Below, one piece after another: positions 1,028 to 16,195 of a stretch of DNA of 64,000 nucleotides. The number at the start of each line of letters is the position of its first letter. The stretch's first letter is position 1. The translations under genes were made by a program, and so were the position numbers. The notes beneath the pieces were generated by a model. It worked only from the letters and a program-made list of their open reading frames with translations, made no database searches and was not told where the DNA came from. The stretch lies in the IMG/VR virus record IMGVR_UViG_3300005613_000001, positions 310,001 to 374,000 of that record, one strand, 5' to 3'.

Positions 1028-1036
1028 AAAGGAAAG

Positions 1037-2186: not shown

Positions 2187-2199
2187 TTATTTCTCCTAG

Positions 2200-2283: not shown

Positions 2284-2799
2284 TTGTTTTTTCCGTCGTT
2301 CTCTTTGTTGCTTTGCAATCGTAGTTATCTCTGCCCAACCTTTTGATCCACACCACCCATCTGTTTGACTATGGCAATTGGGACAATTAAATTCTAAGTT
2401 TTCTTTTCTGTCATCAAGCCAATCTTTATTTTTGTGATCCACTTGGAGCATAATTGGTTTTCCATTCCATTCTCCCTCTAACCCACAAGTGCATTTGTAT
2501 TCTCTTCCTGATTCAATTAATGCTCTTCTTAATCGAAAAGAGTGTTGCCTTTTGCCGTGTGTCCTTTTAATCAATATTTCTTGCCATGTTTTCTTTTTTG
2601 GACCACCCCTATGATTTTTACCACAATTGGCCGCCCGCCCTAGAAAATGTGATGTATCTAAACCAAATTCTTTTATTTTACGTGAAATATGTGTGTGTGA
2701 CCCGCCTGCCTCTTTTAAACCCAACTTTCTTAGCACTTGAGCTATAGAAATAGATTCTTCAACTAATGGTTTTAGTAATGCTTTTGTGTATTTGCTCAT
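2254..2799 (-). CDS. HNH homing endonuclease; last 10 codons overlap tRNA-Leu(TAG)
   Basis: CTCG...LQVDHKN...ENLEFNCPNCHSQT HNH/zinc motifs. Confidence 0.85.
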   Translation of the reverse strand: MSKYTKALLKPLVEESISIAQVLRKLGLKEAGGSHTHISRKIKEFGLDTSHFLGRAANCGKNHRGGPKKKTWQEILIKRTHGKRQHSFRLRRALIESGREYKCTCGLEGEWNGKPIMLQVDHKNKDWLDDRKENLEFNCPNCHSQTDGWCGSKGWAEITTIAKQQRERRKKQAEVAELVDA

Positions 2800-2843
2800 A
2801 CATTAATATAGTATGAGTCTTCCATTTTTTTTGTGTTTTCCAA

Positions 2844-3362
2844 TCATTTTTCGGCATATTGTTTCCACTTTTCATCTAGCCACTTATAAAGGGCTTTGTT
2901 TTCTACTGATTGAGCATGACCTATTATCTTCTCACCAGTATCTACATAACGGTGACCTTTTTCTGGCCCTGTTTCTATTGGTCGCTTGCTTTCTTCACCA
3001 ATCGCCCCATCTTTATCGTCCCACCCCTGCGACTCCGTACAAGGCTCACCTGTGTCCTTGTAATGCCAATCATTAAAATACTCTACTGGTCGTCCAGTTT
3101 CAGTACAAATCGGAGGGTATAAAGACTCTTCTAAAGGAATACCTTCAGGCACAGGTTCTAATTCTTCTAACGCATGCACAGTCCCAAAAGGAGGCCCTGT
3201 ATCCCAGTGATACTCCGTAAATAAGTAATAATTACCAAACTTCTCCCTAATCCCTATAAACCCACTAACTGCCTCCCTGAATACCCCTAAAGATAAATTC
3301 CTAGAGGATATCCGGTAAAGCATTCCATTCTTGCATTCGTCAAGAGGAATCATACTAGCCAC
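2844..3362 (-). CDS. Hypothetical protein
   Basis: 172 aa ORF in operon order. Confidence 0.7.
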   Translation of the reverse strand: MASMIPLDECKNGMLYRISSRNLSLGVFREAVSGFIGIREKFGNYYLFTEYHWDTGPPFGTVHALEELEPVPEGIPLEESLYPPICTETGRPVEYFNDWHYKDTGEPCTESQGWDDKDGAIGEESKRPIETGPEKGHRYVDTGEKIIGHAQSVENKALYKWLDEKWKQYAEK

Positions 3363-3811
3363 CGTCTAATTTGATTTTCCAACTCATCTAAACTTGATAC
3401 TATTTCAATTTCGGGGCGGACCAATTCAACTTGAACTTCCAAATCAAATCTGCGTTCGTAATCAGGATGTACGCCCACAAACAGGTTGTATTTCTTATCC
3501 AACACCTTGCCCAACTCAAACAAAGTGATTGGCTGGATAGTTTCAGGAGTAAACCAAAAACTTACCGCCTCGGTATTACCCAACCAAAAGTGTTCCCATT
3601 TAATTTGTCTTTTTGCCTCGGGGCCTTCTTTTCCGAATTCTTCCCTTCGCCTCGGATTCACCACAAATAGGTCGGTATCCTCAAATCTTTTAGCGAAATC
3701 AAATTGCCAAGGCTCACACCCGGAGATACCACCAGCGAGGAAGATGCTTTGTACGTCAACGAATTCAGCCACATCACAGTTATTCGGGGCTTCCAGGTAT
3801 CTCATCTTCAT
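3350..3811 (-). CDS. Nucleoside 2-deoxyribosyltransferase-like protein
   Basis: IFLAGG..WQ, NPRR, QIKWE, PITLFELG motifs. Confidence 0.8.
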   Translation of the reverse strand: MKMRYLEAPNNCDVAEFVDVQSIFLAGGISGCEPWQFDFAKRFEDTDLFVVNPRRREEFGKEGPEAKRQIKWEHFWLGNTEAVSFWFTPETIQPITLFELGKVLDKKYNLFVGVHPDYERRFDLEVQVELVRPEIEIVSSLDELENQIRRWLV

Positions 3812-3968
3812 CCTCCTTGTCGCATTTATTACAAATTACAGAGCCATGTTCAGGCACAAACCACACACCACATTCTTTACATTTGGTAGTATCGTTTATT
3901 TCACACACCATTTGCATTAATATTTGTTGCTTCATAATACAAGAGGCGTAAGGTGTCCCCGCTACCAA
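3780..3968 (-). CDS. Small Cys-rich hypothetical protein
   Basis: CKEC...CNKC; fills the gap in the operon. Confidence 0.45.
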   Translation of the reverse strand: MVAGTPYASCIMKQQILMQMVCEINDTTKCKECGVWFVPEHGSVICNKCDKEDEDEIPGSPE

Positions 3969-4012
3969 GACCTTGCGGGAAGGTTGTATTTGCCAGGCCG
4001 GTTACCTCCACC

Positions 4013-4459
4013 TTACCACCATTTCCTTCCATTGGGCCTATTTAATGTTAAATGGAAAGCAACAGCCTTATCATCAAAGCCTGTGGTTTCCGAAATATAA
4101 GTCATTACCGCCTCTTTATCTTCAGGAGTACGAGCAGCACTTAAGAGGCGTTCAATATGGTCTTCAACTTCTGGTTTTAATTCTAATTGCTCAAAAGTTT
4201 CACAATAACAATATTTACAACCTACGGGCTCCATGTCTTCATAGGAATCAAAATGCCTGTGATAATGATGGCCGCATTTGCAAATCCTGTAGTTGCCAAA
4301 CTCAGGGTCATATAGTGGGGGTAGTTCGTCTCCTACACAAAGTTCCAATTCATTTCTTACCACTCTGACAACATAACCGTTATCAAGATGAAGTAGAGTT
4401 TGCCATTTCATGGCCTCTACTTTTACTATCGTTCTTCCTGCTAATTCATTTATATCCAA
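4013..4459 (-). CDS. Hypothetical protein with possible Zn-binding motif
   Basis: CKCGH..H.H...CKYC. Confidence 0.65.
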   Translation of the reverse strand: MDINELAGRTIVKVEAMKWQTLLHLDNGYVVRVVRNELELCVGDELPPLYDPEFGNYRICKCGHHYHRHFDSYEDMEPVGCKYCYCETFEQLELKPEVEDHIERLLSAARTPEDKEAVMTYISETTGFDDKAVAFHLTLNRPNGRKWW

Positions 4460-4460
4460 T

Positions 4461-4781
4461 TTATCTTCCTGTCAATGCTCTTTCATAAAGATTCTTCACA
4501 GCTTCTTTGCAAGGTTGGGTGTATTGAATGCCCGGTTCCGTTAATGAAGGCATAAGAAAAACCATACCTTCATGAAGTTGATCTTTTGGTATTCCCATTA
4601 CGACACTGAAATTATTTAAATCAACCATTTGTTCTTCTTCATCCCCCCACCACTCTAACTGATCTTCCGCATGCGACTCAGGATGATCGGGGCATAGTTC
4701 CGTAGATTTTGCCATTAACACCCTTACAGTGTCGTCGTAATCAGGAGCCCTAAAAATTTCATCAATACATAAACGAAGCAT
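4461..4781 (-). CDS. Hypothetical protein
   Basis: ORF with GGAG SD. Confidence 0.65.
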   Translation of the reverse strand: MLRLCIDEIFRAPDYDDTVRVLMAKSTELCPDHPESHAEDQLEWWGDEEEQMVDLNNFSVVMGIPKDQLHEGMVFLMPSLTEPGIQYTQPCKEAVKNLYERALTGR

Positions 4782-4822
4782 GATAAACTCCCTTTTCTAA
4801 TATAGGAACGAAATCACATAAG

Positions 4823-4907
4823 TAGCCGAGGCGGGATTCGAACCCGCACGCCCTTAACGGGCACGGGATTTTAAGTCCCGAGCGTCTGCCAATTCCGCCA
4901 CTCGGCC
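4823..4907 (-). tRNA. trnL: tRNA-Leu(TAA), long variable arm
   Basis: CGGGA-CTTAAAA-TCCCG anticodon arm; canonical D and T arms. Confidence 0.95.
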
Positions 4908-5174
4908 CTCTCCACTTTTACCCGATCTAAGAAACATAAAGGTTCCAAAAAGTATTCCAAAAGTACCCAATACTACGGCCACTAGACCCGGTGTTAAAAT
5001 ACTGAAATCTTTGTTAGCACTTCCAATTCCTGCATACCAAGCGCCAAATATCGCTGCACTATGCCCAACCACAAGAGAGAGCGAACCCAACGCAGCACGG
5101 GGAGCTTTGACCCCCATTTTGGTCATTAGTTTAATCATTAATTTACATCCGTTGGTACATTTCGTTGTTCCCAA
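4854..5174 (-). CDS. Small two-TM membrane protein; 3' end reads into tRNA-Leu(TAA)
   Basis: Two hydrophobic stretches; C-terminal RVAELADARDLK is tRNA-derived. Confidence 0.55.
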   Translation of the reverse strand: MGTTKCTNGCKLMIKLMTKMGVKAPRAALGSLSLVVGHSAAIFGAWYAGIGSANKDFSILTPGLVAVVLGTFGILFGTFMFLRSGKSGEGRVAELADARDLKSRAR

Positions 5175-5536
5175 TGGTTCTCTAATGCTCCCTCAATGAA
5201 AACCAACCAAAGCTCTCGGTCAGAATCCCAAGTTACAAATGATTTAAACATTACAGGACCATTGGGATTGGGGCGGATATCGACCTGCCTCATTACCCCA
5301 GCATCACCACCGAATTCAATTTTTAACGAGGCGGCTACCTCTTCGTTTCCATCAATATCTTCTACTATCCCCTCAACCATCCTCGCCACTCTCTCTTTTG
5401 TATCCTCCCGTCCTACACACTGGACAGCAGCACGCATCATGGGAGAGAACGAACAAACATAGGGAATATGAAAGCCGTCAGATGTAAGATAGTCGGAAAC
5501 GAATGCATAGTTTTTCATTTTTTCTTCCTGTGACAA
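5138..5536 (-). CDS. Hypothetical protein
   Basis: 132 aa ORF in operon order. Confidence 0.65.
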   Translation of the reverse strand: MSQEEKMKNYAFVSDYLTSDGFHIPYVCSFSPMMRAAVQCVGREDTKERVARMVEGIVEDIDGNEEVAASLKIEFGGDAGVMRQVDIRPNPNGPVMFKSFVTWDSDRELWLVFIEGALENHWEQRNVPTDVN

Positions 5537-5691
5537 TCACAGCGACATGGTGTTTTGTTGCCCGCCTTCTTAGAACACTCTTTTGGAGTTAATCCAGGGG
5601 CGGCACAACAACATACCGTTTGCTTTACCTCACCATCTACAATCCGCTTAACTTCCGTCCAATACTCACCAGATTTGCGGAAAGTAGTCAT
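5515..5691 (-). CDS. Small Cys-rich hypothetical protein
   Basis: Start reset to the ATG 2 nt after the tRNA discriminator base. Confidence 0.5.
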   Translation of the reverse strand: MTTFRKSGEYWTEVKRIVDGEVKQTVCCCAAPGLTPKECSKKAGNKTPCRCDCHRKKK

Positions 5692-5693
5692 AG

Positions 5694-5776
5694 TACCGAA
5701 GGTGGGATTTGAACCCACACGCCCTTACGGACAATAGATTTTGAATCTATCGCGTCTGCCATTCCGCCACTTCGGC
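5694..5776 (-). tRNA. trnL: tRNA-Leu(CAA), long variable arm
   Basis: ATAGA-TTCAAAA-TCTAT anticodon arm. Confidence 0.95.
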
Positions 5777-6036
5777 TAATTATTAAGATGCAAATGTTCT
5801 TTGCGGTAACGATCCTGCAATTCTTGCCCGCCTCCTAATTTCTCAATGTCCGACAGACCAGTTTTTTCACCTAATGCTTGAATACAAATTGGGCAACATG
5901 GAGTATTTTCCTCAGGATCGCGGTTATCAATAATCAACAGACCACAAAATGTCAAAGAGGCATCGGCATCGCCCATGTGAACAAAACCGTTAATTTGTGT
6001 TACATCAAATGAGTCTATTTTTTCACTTTGGCTCAT
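5776..6036 (-). CDS. Hypothetical protein
   Basis: Start reset to MSQSE; stop TAG shares its G with tRNA base 1. Confidence 0.6.
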   Translation of the reverse strand: MSQSEKIDSFDVTQINGFVHMGDADASLTFCGLLIIDNRDPEENTPCCPICIQALGEKTGLSDIEKLGGGQELQDRYRKEHLHLNN

Positions 6037-6439
6037 TGCTTGTCCCTGGCGCGTTACGACTGATAGGTGTTTGAGCATTTGCCTCCGCAGACTCAGCAAA
6101 TTCTGCTAGGTCTTTAAACACTTTATTTGCTTCTGTAGACAAATTACTTGCCATTCCTATTACTCTTTCCACCGAATCACGCATTTTCTCTAATTTTACT
6201 TCCGGTGTAAGTTTTTCAAGCCACTCTAAGACGGAAGTATTATTATCCCATTTATTAGGAAGATCACCAATTAGATCAACGCCTCTATAATTTATTTTGA
6301 ATTTACCGCACTGACAGCGGTAGTAATGATAACTCGGCCATCTATTACAAACTCCCCCACGATCTAGGATATCGGTCTTTTTTAGCCCGCTTTTTCCACC
6401 TAAACATTCCCATTTATGTTTGTGTCCTAAACCAAACAT
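6023..6439 (-). CDS. Hypothetical protein
   Basis: 138 aa ORF in operon order. Confidence 0.65.
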   Translation of the reverse strand: MFGLGHKHKWECLGGKSGLKKTDILDRGGVCNRWPSYHYYRCQCGKFKINYRGVDLIGDLPNKWDNNTSVLEWLEKLTPEVKLEKMRDSVERVIGMASNLSTEANKVFKDLAEFAESAEANAQTPISRNAPGTSNEPK

Positions 6440-6449
6440 TTAATCTTCC

Positions 6450-6899
6450 TTAATCTGGGGTTACTTGTTCGCCGGAAATCTCTTCAATTAGAGATTCGTA
6501 ATGCATAACGAGGCTTATCCAGGGATCAATTTGCTCTAATAGTTCATCTCTGTTTAGCTTTTGTAGATTGCTTGACAACATCCAATACTCAGGTTTTGTG
6601 AGTGGTCTTTCTCTAGCCTTTTTTAGAATTTCTACCTCGGCACGGACTTCTTTCAATCGACTTGATAAAGCATGTTCAAGCAAAAAGCAATCATCAATAC
6701 CAAACACTAACGTTTTATATCTTGTTTGCTGGTCTTCCCACCATCGTTCGAATTGTTCATCTGACTTGAAATTACATACCTCCACCCGATCAAACATCTC
6801 AGTATTGGGAGGCATTTCACCCGCAAAGTCTTCCTCGGCTTTTTCGCCATCTTTCCAGAGGACGGGGATGTTCTTCCAATATGCTACTGTGCGTATCAT
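6450..6899 (-). CDS. Hypothetical protein
   Basis: 149 aa ORF with ATGA overlap to the upstream gene. Confidence 0.7.
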   Translation of the reverse strand: MIRTVAYWKNIPVLWKDGEKAEEDFAGEMPPNTEMFDRVEVCNFKSDEQFERWWEDQQTRYKTLVFGIDDCFLLEHALSSRLKEVRAEVEILKKARERPLTKPEYWMLSSNLQKLNRDELLEQIDPWISLVMHYESLIEEISGEQVTPD

Positions 6900-7357
6900 T
6901 TGTCTCCCTTTAATTTTCTACCATGCTTTGCAAGAGTCTCTCTCAATTCAATTAATGTTGAATTGCCAAAATTGGGACAATTTACAAAATCGTCTGCGGT
7001 AAAAGAACACAACTCATTAAAACAAAAATTCTTTCTATCGGCTTGCCCATATTTTCCATACATAAGACGAATAAAAGCCTTTTTGGCTCGCAATGGCATT
7101 TGGGAATAAAATAATTTAAACTCATCTGTTGGAAGACAATCATCAACTCTCACTTCAACAGTGGCTTTCATCGCCTTTTTTACCGTCGCTTCTAATGCTT
7201 CAAATTGTTGCACCCAATCTTCATGTGGATTTTTACAGGTTTCACTTGCTATATGACAAAGCTTATAGACAAAACTCTGCCAGTCTGTTGGGGGTTCTAA
7301 GTCTAGAAGTGTGAAACCCTCTAAAGTTTTACATACTCTTTCAGAAAGATCAGACAT
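6896..7357 (-). CDS. Protein with C-terminal RNA polymerase alpha-CTD-like domain
   Basis: MPLRAKKAF...ELCSFTADDFVNCPNFGNSTLIELRETLAKHG resembles the alpha-CTD L..RA...dL....dLl...NFG..sl.Ei...L pattern; SD AAGGAG. Confidence 0.65.
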   Translation of the reverse strand: MSDLSERVCKTLEGFTLLDLEPPTDWQSFVYKLCHIASETCKNPHEDWVQQFEALEATVKKAMKATVEVRVDDCLPTDEFKLFYSQMPLRAKKAFIRLMYGKYGQADRKNFCFNELCSFTADDFVNCPNFGNSTLIELRETLAKHGRKLKGDK

Positions 7358-7375
7358 TTTAAACTCCTTTAAAAG

Positions 7376-7459
7376 TGCCGAAGGTGGGACTTGAACCCAC
7401 ACGGGATTTCTCCCACATGGCCCTCAACCATGCGCGTCTGCCAATTCCGCCACTTCGGC
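7376..7459 (-). tRNA. trnL: tRNA-Leu(GAG), long variable arm
   Basis: CATGG-TTGAGGG-CCATG anticodon arm. Confidence 0.95.
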
Positions 7460-7680
7460 TATTTTCTATTTTCTTCCCTACGTTGCCTGAAACTTTTACC
7501 ATCTGGATTGCGAGGGGCATCCAAATCTTTTTGATCTTCTTCTAAACACCATTTAACAAATTTACAAATTATGTCCAACTCTTCTTTTGATGCATCTACA
7601 TGATCAAATCGCCAATGGTCTAATCTTATAGCCAAGTTCTCTGAACATTCTTCAATTAAATCAGCGGGCTCTATTTTCAT
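7459..7680 (-). CDS. Hypothetical protein
   Basis: ORF; stop abuts the tRNA 5' end. Confidence 0.6.
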   Translation of the reverse strand: MKIEPADLIEECSENLAIRLDHWRFDHVDASKEELDIICKFVKWCLEEDQKDLDAPRNPDGKSFRQRREENRK

Positions 7681-7931
7681 TCCTGCCTTTCATCTATTGT
7701 TTTAAACTCTTCATGACAAGCAAAACATCTAACTATGTGGGGAATTTGAACCATTTCAAATTGATCCCAACCTTCTGGTAGCTCTTCCCATTCTTCTAGT
7801 CCATGAAAATCACGATATGCTTCCTCCCGCCCCTCTTTTGTAAATTCTGCCTTTTGAGGAAGGGCATAATTAGCGGCATCGCAATGTGGGCAATACCAAT
7901 GATAGGCGGTTTGTAATTCAACTACTTTCAT
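7677..7931 (-). CDS. Zinc-ribbon hypothetical protein
   Basis: CPHC ... CFAC. Confidence 0.65.
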   Translation of the reverse strand: MKVVELQTAYHWYCPHCDAANYALPQKAEFTKEGREEAYRDFHGLEEWEELPEGWDQFEMVQIPHIVRCFACHEEFKTIDERQE

Positions 7932-8119
7932 GTTTTTTTACAGGGACAACTTGAACAGCCATCATCTAATGATCTTTCCCAACAGGTAATACTATCACCA
8001 CAGGTATTGCGATTTCCGCCTCCTATTGTAAATGTGACTATCCTAGATTTGGGTTCTTCTGGAAGTTTTGGTACAAAAACTCCTGCAATACAAGTAGCCA
8101 AAAAACTACGTCTTTTCAT
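7928..8119 (-). CDS. Small protein with twin-arginine-like N-terminus
   Basis: MKRRSFLATCIAGVFVP; Cys-rich C-terminus. Confidence 0.5.
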   Translation of the reverse strand: MKRRSFLATCIAGVFVPKLPEEPKSRIVTFTIGGGNRNTCGDSITCWERSLDDGCSSCPCKKT

Positions 8120-8283
8120 GATTCGTACCCGTTGTATCTCCCATAGCCCGGTTGGCATTCTGGGTTTCTTTTTGCTCTACGACGCTCAATTCTTCTTTTG
8201 CTAACTTTCAGGTGACGATGATACTTCCCGTGGCAGTAACCATCGGCTTGTTCTACGCTAGCTACTTTTCTGTCTTTAGCCAT
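8116..8283 (-). CDS. Small basic hypothetical protein
   Basis: GGAG SD and an upstream TGTGG-TATACT promoter. Confidence 0.55.
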   Translation of the reverse strand: MAKDRKVASVEQADGYCHGKYHRHLKVSKRRIERRRAKRNPECQPGYGRYNGYES

Positions 8284-8315
8284 TGATAGTCTCCCATTTA
8301 CAGTATACCACACAT

Positions 8316-8618
8316 TCAGCTAATGGAAACCAAATCAAATCCGTAAAAGCCATCCACTTGCTCTTTATTGCCGGTATCGTCTTCTATCTCGGCATGTTTG
8401 TATTGAGCCTTCAAACAAGCCGCCTCTGCCCTTTCTCGGGTTTTAAATAGAAAAACGGACTGACAACATCCACAGATTGCTTGGCAAGTTACCTTAGTCC
8501 AGCCTTTATATTCATTTTTATATTTATCCTCCACTTTATCTAATGTACGTTTAGATTTAGGAGGCGTGGGCTTTTTACGCTCAAATTTCTTCTGTTTTCT
8601 CTTTTTCATTTTTCTCAA
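8316..8618 (-). CDS. Hypothetical basic protein
   Basis: ORF in operon order. Confidence 0.5.
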   Translation of the reverse strand: MRKMKKRKQKKFERKKPTPPKSKRTLDKVEDKYKNEYKGWTKVTCQAICGCCQSVFLFKTRERAEAACLKAQYKHAEIEDDTGNKEQVDGFYGFDLVSIS

Positions 8619-8793
8619 AATGCCATTTATTTAATTGTTGTCGCAATTCCTCTAACTCTTCTTCTCTGAATGTCATATTACGGAATTCAGTCTTCACCTG
8701 ATATCCAGCACCACCCGCAGGGTAGCAAATTTCTCTTTTGCACTTTACTAGACACCAACCATCTTCATTGGTAATGATATGGATTTTTCTCAT
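8581..8793 (-). CDS. Hypothetical protein
   Basis: ORF in operon order. Confidence 0.5.
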   Translation of the reverse strand: MRKIHIITNEDGWCLVKCKREICYPAGGAGYQVKTEFRNMTFREEELEELRQQLNKWHFEKNEKEKTEEI

Positions 8794-8965
8794 ATCGCTT
8801 CACCATTTCAATTATAATATTGCCTTTTTCATCGGTGTTTTCACATTCTGGACAAAGTTCAAGACCAGTCCCGCCGATTACGCTTTCTAAATATGCGGTT
8901 CTAGAAAACGCCTTCTTACATTCTGGACATTCCGTAGTGACTTCTACTTTTGTTCCCCAAGTCAT
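8765..8965 (-). CDS. Zinc-ribbon hypothetical protein
   Basis: CPEC ... CPEC. Confidence 0.55.
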   Translation of the reverse strand: MTWGTKVEVTTECPECKKAFSRTAYLESVIGGTGLELCPECENTDEKGNIIIEMVKRYEKNPYHYQ

Positions 8966-9125
8966 AATTTTCTTTTTTTTGATGAATCTCTACTTTCTCA
9001 ACTCTAAATTTCTTTCTATAGCTTTTTCAAGACTAGTTGCCTTAATGGCCCCATAAAACTGTTCTAATTTTGGGGCGAAACAAAAGTAGGTCTTTTCCAT
9101 CGAAATCTCCTTTTGTTTTATTTAG

Positions 9126-9204
9126 TGGCACAAGAGGGATTCGAACCCTCATCCACATGTTTTTGAAACATGTCGCTCTGCCAGGGTGATTGGCGTATTG
9201 TGCC
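9126..9204 (-). tRNA. trnL: Atypical tRNA with CAA (Leu) anticodon, short variable loop and enlarged D loop
   Basis: GGCACAA/TTGTGCC-A acceptor; CATGT-TTCAAAA-ACATG; 5-nt variable loop TGGAT; GAGGG-TTCGAAT-CCCTC. Confidence 0.85.
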
Positions 9205-9208
9205 TCAG

Positions 9209-9285
9209 TGGCTCAGGTGGGATTCGAACCCACATCCACATAATTTTAAGTTATGTCGCTCTGCCGTTAGTTGGCGTACTGAGCC
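9209..9285 (-). tRNA. trnL: Atypical tRNA with TAA (Leu) anticodon and short variable loop
   Basis: GGCTCAG/CTGAGCC-A; CATAA-CTTAAAA-TTATG; variable loop TGGAT. Confidence 0.85.
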
Positions 9286-9289
9286 TTCA

Positions 9290-9496
9290 TCATCCAAATG
9301 CCTTTCTAGCATCTGTTTCGTTATTGAACAAACGACAACCCCAATAGGTTAAACTGTTTTCGTCAAACGATGAGTTGTTAGCTAATGCTATTTTACATGC
9401 TTCGTTAAAAGTGTCTGCTTCTTGAATGGCATACAAGAAAGCCGTACCACTCTGTCCCGTCGCCCTAAACCCTTCTACCCAAATTTCAAATTTCAT
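9290..9496 (-). CDS. Hypothetical protein
   Basis: ATG with GAGG SD. Confidence 0.65.
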   Translation of the reverse strand: MKFEIWVEGFRATGQSGTAFLYAIQEADTFNEACKIALANNSSFDENSLTYWGCRLFNNETDARKAFG

Positions 9497-9515
9497 TTTA
9501 ACCTCTTTTTTCAAG

Positions 9516-9594
9516 TAGCACGGGAGGGATTCGAACCCTCATCCACTAGTTTCTAAAACTAGTCGCTCTGCCAGGGTGATTGGCGTACCGTGCC
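9516..9594 (-). tRNA. trnL: Atypical tRNA with TAG (Leu) anticodon and short variable loop
   Basis: GGCACGG/CCGTGCT-A; CTAGT-TTTAGAA-ACTAG; D and T arms identical to the 9126 gene. Confidence 0.85.
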
Positions 9595-9598
9595 ATAT

Positions 9599-9796
9599 TT
9601 ACAAGTTGTCACTCAATGATTTTAAATCTTTTATAATTTGCTTATCAATAGGCTCTAAAAGTTTTGAACTAATATCCGCATGCTTAGCACATGATGCACA
9701 CAAATGCCGAAGACCATTCAAATACTGCCGCGTTGTTACCGCATCTTCATCGCAGGTCGCCCTTGGATTGCTACTATGCCAATGTTCGCATTTCAT
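9599..9796 (-). CDS. Small Cys/His hypothetical protein
   Basis: CEHWH...C...CASC. Confidence 0.5.
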   Translation of the reverse strand: MKCEHWHSSNPRATCDEDAVTTRQYLNGLRHLCASCAKHADISSKLLEPIDKQIIKDLKSLSDNL

Positions 9797-9814
9797 GATA
9801 AAATTAAGTTAATT

Positions 9815-10200
9815 GTGCGTGGTCCACACCCCTTTCAGGGTTCTGTTACTGCTTCGGGTAGTCAGTGGTTTATTTCTGACCTTGAAGCAACCTATCTTGT
9901 GTGGTAGGTCTGCGGGTATCAGTCATTTTTGTTCAACTTGTAAGAGTTACTTACAAGTTGGATTTGTTAGACATTCCCGCCCCCGCTTTATTACGTATGC
10001 GGTTGCCACCGTCCAATAGTTCTCCATCTATCGGACCCTTTCGCTGGTTAAGGCGATACCGACACAATCAACTTTGTTTGCAGCTTAGGATCAATACATG
10101 CACCCTGACCTTACGCCCGCAAGCGGCCAATTAATTTGACTTACCAGGCAGCACCTTGTTAGTTCCCCTAAGCCCCATCAAGGCTATTCGGTTGCAAACA
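9815..10200 (-). ncRNA. Putative large structured ncRNA (unclassified) within the tRNA array
   Basis: No credible ORF. Helices TGTTTGCA/TGCAAACA, GCTTAGG/CCTAAGC, an 11-bp CAACTTGTAAG hairpin, a CUUG tetraloop and a GAAA tetraloop. Confidence 0.55.
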
Positions 10201-10202
10201 AG

Positions 10203-10287
10203 CGGAAGGTGGGGGATTCGAACCCAACCAACCCATTTTCAGGGCGACCGGCTTCCAACCGGCTTCCTAACCATTCGGTTACCTTCC
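10203..10287 (-). tRNA. trnS: tRNA-Ser(GGA); T stem has two mismatches (possibly degenerate)
   Basis: GGAAGGT/ACCTTCC-G; loop TTGGAAG; long variable arm; T stem TTGGG/CCCCC. Confidence 0.75.
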
Positions 10288-10298
10288 AAATTATAAAG

Positions 10299-10386
10299 CG
10301 GAAGGAGCCGGAGTCGAACCGGCACGGGTCGTTAACCCCTAACAGTTTTCAAAACTGCGGCCACCACCACATTGGCTTGCCCTTCC
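10299..10386 (-). tRNA. trnS: tRNA-Ser(TGA)
   Basis: GCAGT-TTTGAAA-ACTGT; long variable arm; G73. Confidence 0.92.
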
Positions 10387-10393
10387 TAAAAAG

Positions 10394-10482
10394 CGGAAGC
10401 GACTGGAATCGAACCAGCACCGGGTTTGAAACCGGAATTGATTAGCAATCAACCGCAACGAGCCAATATTTGCCTCGCTTCC
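10394..10482 (-). tRNA. trnS: tRNA-Ser(GCT)
   Basis: GTTGA-TTGCTAA-TCAAT; long variable arm; G73. Confidence 0.92.
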
Positions 10483-10487
10483 GTAAG

Positions 10488-10569
10488 TGCGCCAGAGAGG
10501 AATCGAACCTCTACAGCCGAAGGCGTGTGATTTACAGTCACAGGGGCTCACCACCTGCCCAACTGACGC
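10488..10569 (-). tRNA. trnY: tRNA-Tyr(GTA)
   Basis: TGTGA-CTGTAAA-TCACA. Confidence 0.93.
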
Positions 10570-10584
10570 ATTTTTAACTCCTAG

Positions 10585-10670
10585 TGGGCCGGGAGGGATT
10601 CGAACCCCCATCGTTTACCCTGTGGGACGTGATTTACAGTCACGTAGCTTCACCATTTGCATACCGACCC
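10585..10670 (-). tRNA. trnY: tRNA-Tyr(GTA), second divergent copy
   Basis: CGTGA-CTGTAAA-TCACG. Confidence 0.93.
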
Positions 10671-10674
10671 TAAG

Positions 10675-10760
10675 CGGAAGCGGTGGGACTCGAACCCACA
10701 ACGGGCTTTCGCCGCGCACTTGTTTTCGAGACAAGCTCCTCATCCAGCCGGATCGCTTCC
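10675..10760 (-). tRNA. trnS: tRNA-Ser(CGA)
   Basis: CTTGT-CTCGAAA-ACAAG; long variable arm. Confidence 0.93.
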
Positions 10761-10778
10761 GTAGGCTTTACCAAATTG

Positions 10779-11015
10779 TCAAAGATCTCTCTGCCGCCTC
10801 TTTGAGACAGCCTTTTCTCTCAAGTACAATTCCAATTCTTTCGCATCTTCTGGGGTCATTGAAGCAATCTTATCTCCAAGAGCCCTAATCCAATCATCGG
10901 GATTTGTTGTGCCCACTTTCGGTGGTTTCCGAGGCGGCACCAAATCCGGGTTTGTTTTCAATTCTTCTGAAAACTCTTCCAAACCTTCAATGATTTTCTC
11001 TGCTATAGTTTTCAT
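10779..11015 (-). CDS. Hypothetical protein
   Basis: ATG 2 nt after the tRNA-Phe discriminator base. Confidence 0.6.
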   Translation of the reverse strand: MKTIAEKIIEGLEEFSEELKTNPDLVPPRKPPKVGTTNPDDWIRALGDKIASMTPEDAKELELYLREKAVSKRRQRDL

Positions 11016-11017
11016 AG

Positions 11018-11090
11018 TGGTACGGGCCGGATTCGAACCGGCGTCTCCTGGGCTTCAACCAAGCGCTATTCCAAACTCAGCTACCGCACC
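11018..11090 (-). tRNA. trnF: tRNA-Phe(GAA) with G37/C38
   Basis: CTTGG-TTGAAGC-CCAGG; GGTGCGG/CCGTACC-A. Confidence 0.88.
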
Positions 11091-11096
11091 TTTTAG

Positions 11097-11170
11097 TGCT
11101 ACGGACTGGATTTGAACCAGTGACACCCAGATTTTCAGTCTAGTGCTCTACCGGGCTGAGCTACCGCAGC
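11097..11170 (-). tRNA. trnF: tRNA-Phe(GAA)
   Basis: CTAGA-CTGAAAA-TCTGG. Confidence 0.95.
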
Positions 11171-11180
11171 ATTTTAAGTT

Positions 11181-11330
11181 TTACATCATATATCCTGAAC
11201 CATCTCTACCGCCATCTGTACGACAAGGAAGATCTTCTTGACTTCCTTTTGGTGGTTCTGGTCGTTCTCCCATGTTCTCGGGTGGATTTTGACCACCTTT
11301 ACAAATTTCTGGTTCTGTTATGTGCTTCAT
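11181..11330 (-). CDS. 49-aa hypothetical protein, first gene after the attenuator
   Basis: Hand-translated MKHITEPEICKGGQNPP...GYMM; GGAG SD. Confidence 0.5.
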   Translation of the reverse strand: MKHITEPEICKGGQNPPENMGERPEPPKGSQEDLPCRTDGGRDGSGYMM

Positions 11331-11345
11331 TTATGTTACTCCAAT

Positions 11346-11386
11346 AAAAAAAGCCTTTTTCCGGCGTTGCGCCGGAAAAAGGCTTT
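11346..11386 (-). terminator. Intrinsic terminator (attenuator 3:4 hairpin)
   Basis: 17-bp stem AAAGCCTTTTTCCGGCG/CGCCGGAAAAAGGCTTT with a 3-nt loop, ending in a run of 7 T. Confidence 0.9.
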
Positions 11387-11406
11387 ATCGTTGAATCCTC
11401 TTAGCC

Positions 11407-11481
11407 TTAGGCGCACCGCCACCGATCACTGAGATACAGTGATAAAAACAAAAAACTAAGGCTTGAGGAGAAGATACCCAT
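11407..11481 (-). CDS. Putative attenuator leader peptide MGIFSSSLSFLFLSLYLSDRWRCA
   Basis: AAGGAAG SD 8 nt upstream; codons 4-18 are all Phe/Ser/Leu/Tyr; overlaps hairpin segments 1 and 2. Confidence 0.8.
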   Translation of the reverse strand: MGIFSSSLSFLFLSLYLSDRWRCA

Positions 11482-11541
11482 TTTAAACACTTCCTTTTCG
11501 TGATTTCAACCCACGCCATAAAGGCGATTGTTGTGTAATCT

Positions 11542-11570
11542 ATTATAGTCCACTCAGGACAAATTTTCAA
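11542..11570 (-). promoter_or_regulatory. sigma70-type promoter of the tRNA operon
   Basis: TTGAAA-N17-TATAAT. Confidence 0.85.
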
Positions 11571-11670
11571 GAGTTTTTTTCCAAGAGTTAGCGAGTGGGT
11601 GGTGGTGGCTGCTAGGATGGTAAGCATCTTCGAGCGTCCTGACCCACCCGCCGACTCTATGACGCATTTT

Positions 11671-12015
11671 TCATTCGGCAGGTTCGGTACAATTCCTTTT
11701 TTTCTTCAAGCCCCCCGATCTGACTACTTCATTGATCGCCAAAAGAAGGGCTTCTCCCATATTCCTGCCTGTTTCTATGAATTCATCACCATCTTCATTC
11801 CAAACTCTAGCTCTCAATGACGTAGAGACCTCATCATGAGGGTATACGCCAACCTCCCAATACCATTTGGTTTCGGGCCACTCATTAGAATGAAGACAAT
11901 TCGCAGCCAACTCCGCCACACTAGCAGGATCGTGTGCAATTACTACTTCAGATGTCCAAACACCCCCTATTACGGTGGATATGTTTTCCGCTAAGTCTTC
12001 TGGCAACAGGTCCAT
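11671..12015 (-). CDS. Hypothetical protein, probably a leaderless transcript
   Basis: ATG 6 nt after the TATCAT -10 element. Confidence 0.6.
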   Translation of the reverse strand: MDLLPEDLAENISTVIGGVWTSEVVIAHDPASVAELAANCLHSNEWPETKWYWEVGVYPHDEVSTSLRARVWNEDGDEFIETGRNMGEALLLAINEVVRSGGLKKKRNCTEPAE

Positions 12016-12021
12016 ATTCCC

Positions 12022-12049
12022 ATGATACCACACGAAATTACGATGTAAA
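12022..12049 (-). promoter_or_regulatory. Extended -10 promoter
   Basis: TTTACA-N16-TATCAT with TGTGG immediately upstream of the -10. Confidence 0.65.
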
Positions 12050-12080
12050 GCTACTCTCTTAGAGAAAATAGGAGAAATCT

Positions 12081-13136
12081 ATGAGAATCAAAGGCGGCTT
12101 CGTACCCAAGATTACGATAAACAATCAATTTGGAGATGCATTTGAGGCTCCTCAAAAAGTTACCTCAGAGGAGAAGATTGAAAAGCTTAAAAAGGCAAAA
12201 AGGGTGGAAACCCCTGTTATTGAAGTGCCTATTTCTCCTGTTGGTCCTAAGAATGTTTTATTTCTTTACCCGGCGACTGAAGAAAACAATAGGCTAGATT
12301 TATACCTCAATAATTTATTTGACCGCGACAGTGTGGGTGTTGCAAAAACATTTCAAGAAGTTGCGGATCAAATGAGTGCGTATGATGTTTTGCATATTCA
12401 ATACGATGAAGAGTTGTATAATGATAAAGAGTTAGTGCAGTTAATGGAAGCTCTTAAGGGCAAATATAATATAAACATTTTTATCACTCTCAATACATTA
12501 ACTAGCGAAAAAACACAATTCTATCAATATTTGTCACGCATTTGCCATGTGGTTGTCAACAACTCTATTCCAGCAAGATTTAATCAGAATATAAACTTCA
12601 TAGAGCCCGGTTGTGTGGCGGTTGATGTGCCTTTCCAATCTGAAAAAAATGATAAGATTGCCACATTCGGGTTTTCAACTCCTATCAAGAATACAGAATC
12701 TTTGGGAATGATCGCTAAAGAACTAGACACGGAGGTTGATGTTTATAGTCCGAACGAATATATGGGCAGCTATTCAGGGGTCAATATAATAAATGAATTT
12801 ATCCCAATGGATGAACTACTTGAAAAGCTCTCCCAATACCGCCTCTTATTATTTCTCCGTAGAAATTCTTCTTATTTGAGTGCTAGTCACAGTGTTCGTT
12901 TGGCTTTAAATTGCAGGGTGCCAATTATCTGTCAGTCTTCACCATACTTCAGTGATTTAGCCCATGTGGTCAAAGTGGCTGATTATGAGGATATTCCTAG
13001 AACGATCCACAGTTTATTTTCTGATGAGTCTCAATATCATGAGATGATTGCAAAACAAGAGGATTTTTTAGCCCAACACACTGTAGATGAGGCATTCCAG
13101 CAACACTTAGTTTTATACGATAGAGTGTTAAGGTAA
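12081..13136 (+). CDS. Glycosyltransferase-like (GT-B/GT4-like) protein
   Basis: TFGFSTPIKN, ALNCRVPIICQSSPYFSDL, C-terminal GT-B-like helix. Confidence 0.6.
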   Translation: MRIKGGFVPKITINNQFGDAFEAPQKVTSEEKIEKLKKAKRVETPVIEVPISPVGPKNVLFLYPATEENNRLDLYLNNLFDRDSVGVAKTFQEVADQMSAYDVLHIQYDEELYNDKELVQLMEALKGKYNINIFITLNTLTSEKTQFYQYLSRICHVVVNNSIPARFNQNINFIEPGCVAVDVPFQSEKNDKIATFGFSTPIKNTESLGMIAKELDTEVDVYSPNEYMGSYSGVNIINEFIPMDELLEKLSQYRLLLFLRRNSSYLSASHSVRLALNCRVPIICQSSPYFSDLAHVVKVADYEDIPRTIHSLFSDESQYHEMIAKQEDFLAQHTVDEAFQQHLVLYDRVLR

Positions 13137-13165
13137 TATAATAAATACAAGCAAGGAGGTCAAGT

Positions 13166-13873
13166 ATGAATATGATTGGTTGGATTGTAATTATTTTACT
13201 GGCGGCTGCTTTCATGTATTGGCAGAGACGCAAAATCCTTCTTTCTTTAATGAATTGGAGCATCTACACCTGGGTCTTACGAAGGGTTATCCCTTACATT
13301 AGATTTAGCTTCTACTACACCACCATGAGAGGGTGGAAATACAAAAGAGGGTATGAACTTTTAAAGCCAGGACATATTCTTCTTACTAAAGACAATTCAA
13401 AGTTATCCACTTTTTTGATCCCCGGCAGTCTTCCACATGCTGCTCTTTGTGTTGGGAAGATTGAAGATGGGGATGATTATGAAATTGGGGAGATGATAGC
13501 CAAGGGTTATACTAAGAGTTTCTTTTTTGATTGCTGCCACGAAGCAGATAGAATTGTAATTTTAGATTGTGTTGATTGGGATGATGAATACAAGCAAAAA
13601 GTTATAGAGAAATGCAAAACCTTTGAGGGTTTGCCTTACGATCTACAGTTTGATTTCGGGGTTGCTGCTCTCTATTGTTCTGAACTCGTTTATCAAGCAG
13701 ACTTTGAGAGGCGATTAGATGTCAATAAGGCTGATTTGATGGGACTCAATGTGCGAGAGTATATTACACCCCAAGGTCTTTTCAACGCCAAAAATGTGGT
13801 GGTAGTTTGGGACTCCGATCAGGAAGAAATTGACGATGAAGAATTTAATACAGCATATTTGAGATTTCAATGA
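13166..13873 (+). CDS. Permuted papain-like NlpC/P60 (YiiX/YebB-like) enzyme with N-terminal TM
   Basis: LKPGHILL, HAALCVG, PYDLQF, LYCSELV. Confidence 0.8.
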   Translation: MNMIGWIVIILLAAAFMYWQRRKILLSLMNWSIYTWVLRRVIPYIRFSFYYTTMRGWKYKRGYELLKPGHILLTKDNSKLSTFLIPGSLPHAALCVGKIEDGDDYEIGEMIAKGYTKSFFFDCCHEADRIVILDCVDWDDEYKQKVIEKCKTFEGLPYDLQFDFGVAALYCSELVYQADFERRLDVNKADLMGLNVREYITPQGLFNAKNVVVVWDSDQEEIDDEEFNTAYLRFQ

Positions 13874-14973
13874 TACGATATGTGATACCATTCAATAGAG
13901 CTAAAAATATAGGTGTTTCTTACAATGAAGCATTTAATGGATTAAACAATGATGATTTTGTTTGTTTTGTTGATGGAGATACCATCTTTTTAGACAGCTA
14001 TTTTGGAACTAAGATTGAAGATATATTAAAGTACAATGAGAAAAAAGGAATAACAATAAATGCAGCCACATGCATGACCAACAGAGTGTATTGTAAATGG
14101 CAAATTTATAATGATGAATGGTCTAATGATAATATGTTAGACCATGACAAATTCACTAAAGAATGTTGGGCAGAACATGGTACAAATGTTGAAGAAATAA
14201 CCAACGAACATATTACTCAGCCACCGCATGGCAATTATCTAATGAGTGGTGTAATGATTCTGCTGAGAAAATCAACTTGGCTAAAAGTTGGTAAATTTAG
14301 AACAAAAGGGATGTTGAGGGTAGATAATAACCTTCATCAAAAATTAATTAACCATAATGAAAAATTATATTTAATGAAGGGGATTTATCTCTATCATAAA
14401 TACAGATTTGGAAACATCAGTGATAAAGGACACTTGAGAAAAAGGAAAAGAAAAACGGTTATAAACGTGGGCCGAGGAAGGACGGGGACAACAAGTTTAA
14501 ATAGAGCATTACGTATGCTGGGATATTGTTCGCTTCATGATCCAAATGTAATTAGAGGCATGCCTATCTTGGATGGTATAAATGAAATAGGCAGATTGGG
14601 ATATAACACTGTGACAGAAAGTGTGCGTTGGACATTAGAAGATATTATAAAAGTAGATGAAGAATATCCTAATATAAAATGGATACTTACCACTAGAAAA
14701 AACAAAGATGTTTGGTATTCAAGTTTTTTAAATCGTCATAAACTCAAGCAGGAAAAACTATCGCTTTGTCTTCCTGGGGCTGATCCAAAATTAGAAACGC
14801 TCTGGAAGTGTGAATTCTATGATGAATATAATAAAATGGTGGTCTCTCATCTTAAAGATAGAGTATTAGTGCTTGAAGCTGAATTGGACTCAGCTTCTAA
14901 ATGGAAAAAGCTTTGTGAATTTCTAGGCAAAGATATTCCAAAAGAGGAATACCCCTTCTTAAACCGCTCTTAA
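13870..14973 (+). CDS. GT-A-like glycosyltransferase fused to a sulfotransferase domain
   Basis: VDGD (DxD-like) motif; VINVGRGRTGTTSL PAPS-binding loop; GEGWE-like WKKLCEFLG..P..PFLN tail. Confidence 0.7.
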   Translation: MIRYVIPFNRAKNIGVSYNEAFNGLNNDDFVCFVDGDTIFLDSYFGTKIEDILKYNEKKGITINAATCMTNRVYCKWQIYNDEWSNDNMLDHDKFTKECWAEHGTNVEEITNEHITQPPHGNYLMSGVMILLRKSTWLKVGKFRTKGMLRVDNNLHQKLINHNEKLYLMKGIYLYHKYRFGNISDKGHLRKRKRKTVINVGRGRTGTTSLNRALRMLGYCSLHDPNVIRGMPILDGINEIGRLGYNTVTESVRWTLEDIIKVDEEYPNIKWILTTRKNKDVWYSSFLNRHKLKQEKLSLCLPGADPKLETLWKCEFYDEYNKMVVSHLKDRVLVLEAELDSASKWKKLCEFLGKDIPKEEYPFLNRS

Positions 14974-15288
14974 AAGATTGTACTTCTTAAAATGCTTACG
15001 ATCTTCGCCATAGATCGGTTCTGTAGCAATAGCGGTAAGTTGGTTGCCAATATCCGCCTCGTAGAAAGGCTTGTATTTAATCCCTAAAGAACTGAGATAG
15101 GAAGTCTGCTTCTCTAATTTCCTCTCATTACTGATCTGACAGATAATGACATGAGGATGTTCAATTTGAGGCGGGATTAAATGGCGAGTGGCTTCAATAG
15201 CCGCGTGAGTAGATTGAACAGCTTGCTGCTCAATAGAAAGATCTTTTCGCACAAGGATGTAAACGTAAGGGGTTTTGTTCTACAACAT
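14959..15288 (-). CDS. Pth2-like peptidyl-tRNA hydrolase; the SD-linked ATG is followed by an in-frame TAG at codon 3
   Basis: YVYILVRKDL..QQAVQSTHAA, EADIGNQLTAIATEP; AAGGAG-ATG-TTG-TAG-AAC. Confidence 0.65.
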
Positions 15289-15298
15289 CTCTCTCTCC

Positions 15299-15607
15299 TT
15301 AAAAGTAAGTAAATTCAACAAACACTTTCGTTAATTTGGCTTTTCTAGCCGCACAGAGACGGTGACAGCCATCTCTTACTCTCATTGCATCTGGATGTAC
15401 GTCAATTATTATAGGATGTTTTTTATCATAGCCCGTTGTTTGGAAGGCTGCTATCAACTTCTTATAACTATTTTCTCGTCTTACCGATACTTTGAGGTCT
15501 TTTAAACTAGAAACCGTTACCCATTTTCTTTCACGCTTCTTTATTGGATGATTAACTAGGTATTCTAGTATTATCTTGACTTCTCTAGCTCTTTGTTTTG
15601 ATCTCAT
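15299..15607 (-). CDS. ParB/Srx-like N-terminal domain protein
   Basis: KLIAAFQTTGY..PIII..VRDGCHRLCAA. Confidence 0.7.
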   Translation of the reverse strand: MRSKQRAREVKIILEYLVNHPIKKRERKWVTVSSLKDLKVSVRRENSYKKLIAAFQTTGYDKKHPIIIDVHPDAMRVRDGCHRLCAARKAKLTKVFVEFTYF

Positions 15608-16195
15608 TTAACCTGAAAAATACTTGCCTAATAAATCTTCAAATGGTCTCCCTCGCTTCTTTATTGTTGATCTCATACTCTTAAACCTTTGAGAGAATCC
15701 ATTTGTATCTAGTGATTCCCATTCTTTTATAGTTTTGAACACTCCTTCTGTTGCATATCTCAAAGGTCCATACCAAAATTCTGTTGCCCAAAATGTTGAA
15801 ATCAATTCGTCAAGAGTTGTATTTCTTGGATGTATTACGTGGCGTTTTGTATCTACACATACAATCATTCCTAAACTGTTTAGTGGAGATGGATAAACTA
15901 TTGTTTGTTTTGTCACTGGGGAGACTAATGACATAGCATGAACAAGAACTTTGCCACCACTATATTTTTTACTTCCAAAAATAAGATAAGGTAAAGGAAG
16001 ATTTACATAGTTTGATCCCTTTATCCTTAATCCCCTTTTGAGTCCTCGCACTTTAATTGTTCGCCTACAAGGGGGATACAATCTAAACGTAGGAGCTATT
16101 TTTTCGTAATTAGGCTCTCCCCATTCAATGTTAATTCTACTTGCAAGAGGTTTTGTGTACCACATATCATCTCCGTACAATTTTGTTTTGCGCAT
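15608..16195 (-). CDS. Prokaryotic E2 family D-like protein
   Basis: YPPCRRTI, LPLPYLIF, PSPLN..IVC, FWATEF, EWE. Confidence 0.5.
   Translation of the reverse strand: MRKTKLYGDDMWYTKPLASRINIEWGEPNYEKIAPTFRLYPPCRRTIKVRGLKRGLRIKGSNYVNLPLPYLIFGSKKYSGGKVLVHAMSLVSPVTKQTIVYPSPLNSLGMIVCVDTKRHVIHPRNTTLDELISTFWATEFWYGPLRYATEGVFKTIKEWESLDTNGFSQRFKSMRSTIKKRGRPFEDLLGKYFSG

Follow-up and report, generated by a model that had tools for sequence, protein, structure and literature searches.

The 64-kb window analysed here is part of a 527-kb IMG/VR contig of a huge myovirus-like phage, and its minus strand carries an array of transfer RNA (tRNA) genes. At the head of this array lies an element of about 230 nt that is probably a ribosome-mediated (leader-peptide) transcription attenuator controlling class II tRNAs (Ser, Leu and Tyr) together with tRNA-Phe. 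We put the probability of this reading at roughly 0.6. The element contains a short open reading frame (ORF) in which 15 consecutive codons specify only Phe, Ser, Leu or Tyr (F/S/L/Y), and the anticodons of all 16 tRNAs in the window belong to the same four amino acids. Homologous leaders were found in front of two other tRNA arrays. The order of the parts is common to all three leaders: a promoter, a Shine-Dalgarno (SD) sequence with a start codon, an F/S/L/Y-rich ORF, a helix 1:2, an inner hairpin, a terminator of 15-17 bp and the first tRNA. Feature coordinates refer to the minus strand of the window unless stated otherwise.

11542-11570, minus strand: sigma-70-type promoter TTGAAA-N17-TATAAT, consensus match 11/12
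11490-11496, minus strand: SD sequence AAGGAAG, 8 nt upstream of the ATG at 11481
11407-11481, minus strand: leader ORF MGIFSSSLSFLFLSLYLSDRWRCA, 24 codons followed by TAA (stop at 11409-11407)
11428-11472, minus strand: F/S/L/Y codon run, the proposed regulatory codons, codons 4-18, 15/15
11456-11469, minus strand: segment 1, TCCTC-A-AGCCTTAG, 5' strand of helix 1:2, inside codons 5-9
11425-11443, minus strand: inner hairpin ATCACTG/CAGTGAT, within codons 13-19
11396-11415, minus strand: segment 2, TGCGCC plus C-TAA-GGCTAAGAGGA, which holds the stop codon and has segment 1 and the terminator 5' arm as alternative partners
11343-11386, minus strand: intrinsic terminator, segments 3:4, a perfect 17-bp stem (11386-11370/11366-11350) with a 3-nt loop and a U-rich tail
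11170-11017, minus strand: two tRNA-Phe genes, the first tRNAs of the array
996-11330, minus strand: transcription unit proposed as gated, with the tRNAs, about 30 small ORFs and a 49-aa ORF

The promoter was the best promoter-like site in the first 16 kb. Its TTGAAA-N17-TATAAT motif occurs once in the window and is preceded by a conserved A-tract (about 11580-11574), and its position predicts a transcription start near 11535. Judging from the sequence signals, the leader ORF is probably translated; its peptide had no Pfam or NCBIfam matches. A first-pass annotation of this DNA had already described the promoter, the SD sequence, the 24-codon ORF and the 15-codon run. All four were confirmed in the sequence, and the codons are exactly those that it listed.

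Codon content of the leader and of its homologues

The F/S/L/Y run of the window comprises three Phe, six Ser, five Leu and one Tyr codons, with five different Leu codons and four different Ser codons among them. Across all six frames of the 64 kb no other F/S/L/Y run is as long, and the next have 12, 12 and 10 codons. Runs of at least 15 codons appeared in 0-1% of Markov-simulated windows, and 15/15 never arose when the 45 nt of the run were shuffled 20,000 times with dinucleotide content preserved. These empirical values replace the earlier estimate of about 1e-9, which came from a uniform model. Read in the other two frames, the run contains F/S/L/Y codons at only 6 of 15 positions.

The tRNAs downstream decode the same set. 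Default ARAGORN detected 11 of them, Rfam detected 15, and relaxed ARAGORN added the 16th. The claim of the first-pass annotation that all 16 are Phe, Ser, Leu or Tyr tRNAs was borne out by both programs, and one more (Ser-GGA, the 17th) follows immediately outside the window, past its position 1. No further tRNA was found from about -19 kb to +74 kb of the window (about 93 kb scanned), which indicates that the F/S/L/Y cluster is a real isolated unit and not a window-edge effect. The first 16 kb contained just two strong minus-strand terminators, the leader terminator (11386-11350) and one at 1027-996, which falls after the last Leu tRNA. Neither in the window nor at the two homologous loci was a promoter-like site detected in the interval from the leader terminator to the first tRNA. 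Transcription of the tRNAs from the leader promoter thus needs read-through of the terminator.

The leader set compared here consists of the window, L008 and LR756511, that is, three leaders from two independent lineages in all collections searched. L008 is a 13-kb contig that was reached via the divergently transcribed 351-aa neighbour, whose homologue there is 78% identical. Its tRNA cluster contains Phe, Tyr, Ser and Leu tRNAs only, with the homologous leader upstream. Coding DNA is 69-84% identical between the window and L008, and conservation across the leader is strikingly uneven. The promoter is identical at 26 of 29 positions, most of the spacer included. The 5' untranslated region (UTR) that follows is under next to no constraint: of 89 alignment columns, 26 are identical and 33 contain gaps. 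Identity rises to 52 of 64 positions in the stretch that starts 4 nt upstream of the ATG and runs to codon 19, and it is complete (55 of 55) over the remainder, which comprises codon 20 onwards, the stop codon, segment 2, the spacer and the 5' arm of the terminator. The longest exact match in the shared 13 kb is 57 nt and falls in the segment 2 region, while the best match within a tRNA is 42 nt. The L008 leader ORF encodes 25 aa because of a 3-nt insertion that keeps the frame, and a U6-G-U4/5 tract within the ORF is common to both alleles. Its terminator (15 bp, -22.7 kcal/mol) ends 52 nt before tRNA-Phe.

Another frame is also open across this region: it is 80 aa long in the window, and in L008 a gene caller predicts 171 aa from it. 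It was rejected as the true gene because it spans the promoter, because the two alleles show no homology in its upstream part, and because the L008 ORF starts midway through a helix-turn-helix (HTH) domain. The 171-aa ORF (L008 9127-9642, minus strand) crosses both promoter and leader, and its first 34 residues match only the C-terminal half of the HTH domain. From its sequence, it is apparently what remains of a gene, joined to a frame that happens to be open. The stop codon of the leader frame itself is followed by a second in-frame stop in the window (TAA GGC TAA, 11407-11401) and in L008, and the stop is doubled as TAG TAG in LR756511 (L016, about 26621-26616).

LR756511 is a 595-kb metagenomic phage in GenBank that was found through a similar tRNA-Tyr. 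It is the only clade-mate of the window phage in the collection, with its SbcC 43.6% identical and all others at 26% or less, and the gene order leader, SbcD, SbcC is conserved between the two. The leader of LR756511 has a promoter-like site, TTGACA-N16-TAAAGT with an upstream TG, in the same relative position as that of the window. An SD sequence (GAAAGGAA) lies 8 nt before a GTG start, and the ORF has 27 codons (MHTFSASLRLSSYSLSSLLYSNVRRGT). The beginning of the ORF aligns with that of the window (TTC TCY NCN AGC YTN NGT) and its middle is unalignable. The segment 2 motif AGGCU(A/U)AG(A/C)GGA..CAACG is kept. An SD-like purine block at matching spacing is present in both L008 and LR756511 despite the diverged 5' UTR around it. 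The terminator of LR756511 (16-17 bp, -29.9 kcal/mol) is unrelated in sequence and ends 36 nt before a tRNA-Ser.

This leader stands before a class II array of 12 tRNAs, all of them Ser, Leu or Tyr (L016 16701-26521), in a genome that, read over its whole length, encodes about 64 tRNAs and a transfer-messenger RNA (tmRNA). Its class I tRNAs, about 48 in number, serve all other amino acids and are located at roughly 220-291 kb (L021 24337-47738 and L022 1434-46073), and both Phe tRNAs are among them. The head of the densest class I block consists of an upstream terminator, two promoters and tRNA-Met, with no ORF or terminator in between; one of these promoters is of the same TTGACA-N16-TG-TAAAGT type as that of the leader. 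The order promoter, short ORF, strong terminator, tRNA was found in LR756511 only at the class II array, 150 kb from the class I tRNAs. An isolated Leu tRNA of this genome is without a leader unit. A covariance model of the three leaders found exactly one copy per genome in 785 kb.

The F/S/L/Y bias is present in all three leaders. In-frame F/S/L/Y codons number 15 of 15 in the window, 14 of 16 in L008 and 16 of 18 in LR756511, and the other frames contain 6-7. The observed counts were reached by 0, 8 and 0 of 20,000 shuffles, respectively. The middle of the LR756511 ORF contains 12 consecutive Ser, Leu or Tyr codons where its nucleotides cannot be aligned to the window, so the bias there is not simply inherited sequence. 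The first-pass annotation had looked to homologous leaders for retention of the ORF and of its bias, and both relatives retained them. It had also raised the possibility that codon content co-varies with array identity. There are three Phe codons in the window and four in L008, where the array begins with tRNA-Phe, and a single one in LR756511 (beside eight Ser and two Tyr codons), where the class II array lacks tRNA-Phe. Across these two independent lineages, it is suggestive that leader codon content follows array content.

Searches of other collections returned the same two close loci. Megablast and blastn against 50,697 phage records gave no further leaders, with matches only to the source contig or L008. 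The same two were all that was returned by IMG/VR scans with leader, tRNA and protein anchors, by a JGI metagenome scan with a 20-mer of the invariant block, and by scans of GTDB genomes for the leader. Blastn with tRNA queries located no additional class II arrays. The flanking 120-aa and 78-aa proteins were orphans in homologue searches and led to no relative, and the assemblies L005, L011 and L009 were identical to one or other close allele and added no variation. Sinorhizobium phage Phosso has a homologue of a gene embedded in the cluster, but the gene there is without tRNA context.

Leader RNA structures and the proposed switch

Helix 1:2 (11469-11456 with 11410-11396) appeared in the minimum free energy (MFE) fold of all three leaders, and so did the terminator helix 3:4. 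For the window, this agrees with the 1:2 pairing named in the first-pass annotation. On comparison of the sequences, the support for helix 1:2 is covariation, not duplex energy. A register-preserving comparison revealed three compensatory pairs (U-A to G-C, U-A to A-U and A-U to C-G) as well as four one-sided changes compatible with wobble pairing, and the terminal pair alone breaks. RNAalifold recovered both helix 1:2 and the inner hairpin from the three leaders, with four pairs changed on both sides. The inner hairpin showed three compensatory pairs across the three leaders in this analysis, and a C-G to U-A compensatory change was seen in L008. It is possibly the core of a pause hairpin. 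The leaders of the window and of LR756511 fold with high stability, with z values of -5.3 and -8.1, respectively. In the MFE folds of these two leaders, the SD sequence is paired with codons 3-4.

The terminator stem of the window has a predicted energy of -27.6 kcal/mol. The first-pass annotation had described it as a 17-bp stem with seven Ts. The stem is indeed perfect over 17 bp, but three of the seven Ts form its last three pairs, and the unpaired tail is UUUUAUU.

Segment 2 contains the stop codon in each of the three leaders and ends 13, 13 and 15 nt from the first base of this codon. At this distance, a terminating ribosome would cover segment 2. The ribosome footprint size used for this masking is general knowledge. 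Folding of the nascent transcript, before the terminator 3' arm has emerged, gave pairing of segment 2 with the terminator 5' arm as the MFE structure in all three leaders, at -16.0 kcal/mol in the window, -13.0 in L008 and -16.1 in LR756511. In the window this is exactly the 2:3 antiterminator proposed in the first-pass annotation, which was recovered as the nascent structure and in other respects fared less well, as described below.

Comparison with Rfam placed the leader in no known family. The scores for Phe_leader (RF01859, 21.3 against a gathering threshold of 55), Thr_leader (RF00506, 17.4 against 55), 23S-methyl (RF01065, 31.4 against 50) and PyrR (RF00515, 22.1 against 54) were all below threshold, and the sub-threshold leader scores came mostly from the terminator hairpin. 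The T-box model (RF00230) had no match at E<=1 in window positions 1-16000 or at E<=10 in 11300-11600.

These features suggest the following switch. The conserved strong promoter would start a leader transcript of about 190 nt. If translation is fast, the ribosome would arrive at the stop codon and its footprint would lie over segment 2, the terminator would form, and the tRNA genes would stay off. If Phe-, Ser-, Leu- or Tyr-tRNA is scarce, the ribosome would stall within the run, with segment 1 melted or covered. Segment 2, freed in this way, would pair with the emerging terminator 5' arm, and RNA polymerase would read into the tRNA array. If there is no translation, helices 1:2 and 3:4 would both form and transcription would terminate. 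The tRNAs under control are the very ones that decode the leader, so that their supply during infection would be regulated by direct negative feedback. The stalling-dependent read-through, the negative feedback and its physiological trigger are what we infer from this arrangement. The gate may act on all 16 tRNAs, and starvation or host anticodon nucleases might be the triggers.

A broader proposal is that the leader serves as a tRNA homeostat for this clade. With its class II and Phe codons, the leader would gauge tRNA availability through ribosome speed, open the terminator only when these tRNAs run short, for example through decay or cleavage of host tRNAs, and close it again as phage tRNAs accumulate. 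We give this proposal about an even chance.

ALTERNATIVES

Before the rival readings are taken up, several results have to be set against the attenuator itself. The collections searched yielded just three leaders from two independent lineages. The energy of the 2:3 antiterminator was no better than that of dinucleotide shuffles (p of 0.14 and 0.34; z about -0.4 in LR756511). Nor did 2:3 offer informative variation, because segment 2 and the terminator 5' arm are invariant in the close alleles and the distant terminators are unrelated. Within the model, the antiterminator is the least supported part. The duplex energy of helix 1:2 taken alone gave p values of 0.08 and 0.15 against shuffles. The folding with ribosome masks that the first-pass annotation had proposed kept the terminator in every equilibrium fold. 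As the terminator always wins at equilibrium, the switch would have to be kinetic, as in classical attenuators. Codon changes between the window and L008 that stay within the F/S/L/Y set and those that leave it stand at 3:2, which matches the neutral expectation, and the pattern of synonymous and nonsynonymous changes between these close alleles favours neither reading frame. In addition, a phage-encoded polymerase might ignore both promoter and terminator. Finally, full-text literature searches gave no leader-peptide attenuator before tRNA genes in phages or bacteria. The attenuator interpretation of the first-pass annotation is partly supported: with the conserved, array-matched architecture of the leader it came through comparisons that might have overturned it, and the plain class I promoters of LR756511 serve as an internal control, while its antiterminator did no better than chance.

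Some of these results would suit a structured small RNA, or a leaky terminator with an incidental ORF. The product would be a stable RNA of about 190 nt, placed much like the functionally uncharacterised stable RNAs in the T4 tRNA region, and the tRNAs would owe their expression to constitutive read-through or to a different polymerase. The conserved, covarying structure and the very stable fold (z of -5.3 and -8.1) fit this explanation, as does the lack of frame preference on comparison of the close alleles; conservation is greatest in the 3' region and the terminator, as in many small RNAs. A small RNA with an incidental ORF leaves unexplained the frame-specific F/S/L/Y enrichment in two lineages (0, 8 and 0 of 20,000 shuffles). 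It also offers no reason for an SD sequence and start codon that hold their proper spacing in an otherwise drifting 5' UTR, for an ORF indel that stays in frame, or for a stop codon fixed in position inside segment 2. We consider this explanation unlikely, although it is marginally the likeliest of the alternatives.

A translation-coupled attenuator could also respond to a signal other than the tRNAs. It could sense ribosome availability, transcription-translation coupling, or uridine triphosphate (UTP) via pausing in the U-rich tract at 11454-11441, as in pyrBI. Its architecture would be the same as that of a tRNA-sensing attenuator, the U6-G-U4/5 tract is conserved in the window and L008, and the weak sub-threshold likeness to several attenuator families in Rfam is in keeping with it. 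However, the U-rich tract was not retained in LR756511, unlike the F/S/L/Y bias. Another signal would also leave the match between codons and array, the restriction of the unit to class II and the link between Phe codons and tRNA-Phe unexplained. We place this explanation next in order and regard it as improbable.

The least probable of the three, in our judgement, is that the element is a gene in its own right, with its own promoter and terminator, which encodes a micro-protein such as a small membrane peptide or type I toxin-like product and lies next to the tRNAs by coincidence: the ORF, with its SD sequence and start codon, is conserved as such, and the window peptide combines moderate hydrophobicity (mean Kyte-Doolittle 1.49) with a basic C-terminus, but mean hydropathy is not conserved (1.49 in the window, 1.18 in L008 and 0.31 in LR756511), the LR756511 peptide with its eight Ser, two Tyr and an Arg in the middle of the run would form no membrane helix, membership of the F/S/L/Y codon set and RNA structure are conserved rather than amino-acid sequence, Pfam and NCBIfam gave no matches, the 3' UTR and terminator are more conserved than the coding part, and no tRNA promoter follows the terminator.

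The tRNA regions and known regulatory systems

The array of the window contains several other features besides the leader.

11330-11181, minus strand: 49-aa orphan ORF with its own SD sequence, between the leader terminator and tRNA-Phe
9126-9204, 9209-9285 and 9516-9594, minus strand: short-arm tRNAs with Leu anticodons (CAA, TAA and TAG), about 78 nt, Rfam scores of 52-54 bits

After the two tRNA-Phe genes the array runs Ser-CGA, two Tyr, Ser-GCT, Ser-TGA and Ser-GGA, continues with the three short-arm tRNAs, and ends with Leu-GAG, -CAA, -TAA, -TAG and -CAG. The 49-aa ORF is absent from L008 and LR756511, which places it outside the conserved unit. The short-arm Leu tRNAs have a short variable arm and an unusually long D-loop, giving them a class I shape, and their anticodons are those of three canonical Leu tRNAs with long arms that the array also contains. 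They escape default ARAGORN, and one is conserved in L008 (7887-7960). About 370 nt of GC-rich DNA, in which no ORF is convincing, separate tRNA Ser-GGA from the next small ORF (9830-10200, minus strand). This stretch is absent from L008, had no Rfam match at E<=1, and may be a structured RNA or a mobile-element remnant.

The clade separates its tRNAs by structural class: the Ser, Leu and Tyr tRNAs (long variable arm) are clustered some 150 kb away from the roughly 48 class I tRNAs, and in the window phage and in L008 Phe has been added to the class II cluster. In LR756511, the motif TTGACA-N16-TAAAGT, often with an upstream TG, recurs at L022 33161-33134, 42330-42303, 44719-44692 and 44910-44883 and at L016 26788-26761, and probably represents the promoter class that drives the tRNA regions of this phage. 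Odd RNAs were noted there at L020 32588-32661, L022 45614-45689 and 45999-46073, and L023 47280-47632. Odd tRNAs included one with the anticodon CTA (of the amber-suppressor type, called Pyl by ARAGORN), one with a four-base anticodon (gaaa) and a 75-nt Ser-CGA. Two of the odd tRNAs are preceded by the hairpin GGATACGAAAGTGTCC (L022 46197-46182 and 45938-45923). The tag encoded by the tmRNA is ANPEFAMAA.

Two observations concern more distant parts of the window phage. A LAGLIDADG homing-endonuclease domain (PHROG 11023) is encoded by the plus-strand ORF at 59037-60446, whose corresponding gene call matches Pfam LAGLIDADG_2. About 1-4 kb past the right end of the window (L014 12207-15041) lies a two-component system, in which two response-regulator genes flank a CHASE3/HisKA/HATPase histidine kinase, beside an HSP20 gene.

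Why phages carry tRNAs has been debated for decades, with codon compensation, replacement of degraded host tRNAs and escape from tRNA-cleaving defences as the explanations under discussion. To our knowledge, work on phage tRNAs treats the arrays as constitutively expressed cargo, and we know of no translated leader with array-matched codons described in a phage tRNA region, nor did the literature searches turn one up. If the attenuator reading is correct, no earlier case is known of a leader-peptide attenuator acting on tRNA genes, or of any regulatory logic for a phage tRNA array. The phage would monitor decoding capacity and feedback-regulate its own tRNA supply, which would point to decoding of Ser, Leu, Tyr and Phe as the limiting or attacked step in these hosts. 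Leader-peptide attenuation, so far tied to amino-acid metabolism and synthetases, would then extend to tRNA genes and to viruses. The element is only about 230 nt long and has sigma-70-type signals, which makes it directly testable by reporter fusions, and the covariance model of the three leaders can be used to mine metagenomes for more members.

The tRNA regions of T4, T5 and jumbo phages are likewise arrays with many small ORFs, sigma-70-like promoters and intrinsic terminators. In contrast to these regions, the class II tRNAs here form a separate, putatively gated unit, with the class I tRNAs behind plain promoters. T-box riboswitches share the logic of the proposed switch, as a specific tRNA pool decides read-through via a terminator and an antiterminator. 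They differ in sensing uncharged tRNA by direct binding, in lacking a leader ORF, and in regulating synthetase or amino-acid genes. The UTP-sensitive attenuators of pyrBI and pyrE also combine a leader ORF with a terminator, and their outcome is set by the proximity of ribosome and polymerase. The U-rich tract of the window leader adds to this likeness, but it is not kept in LR756511, and the genes regulated here are unrelated to pyrimidine metabolism.

The closest parallels are the trpL, hisL, leuL, thrL, pheL and pheM (pheST) leaders of Enterobacteria. They have the same order of parts, with a promoter, an SD sequence, an ORF with regulatory codons and a terminator, and they place the stop codon inside the antiterminator 5' strand and form alternative 1:2, 2:3 and 3:4 helices, as is predicted for the phage leaders. 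Unlike them, the leader described here is encoded by a huge phage, would regulate tRNAs instead of biosynthetic enzymes or a synthetase, and belongs to no Rfam family; its codon run is much longer (15-18 codons) and mixes four amino acids. Leaders that respond to several amino acids are known from ilvGMEDA and ilvBN (Ile, Leu and Val) and from thr (Thr and Ile), where the regulatory codons are interspersed with others, as they are in L008 and LR756511. The amino acids of the ilv and thr leaders share a biosynthetic pathway, whereas those of the phage leaders are linked by tRNAs that are encoded together, the class II Ser, Leu and Tyr tRNAs and Phe.

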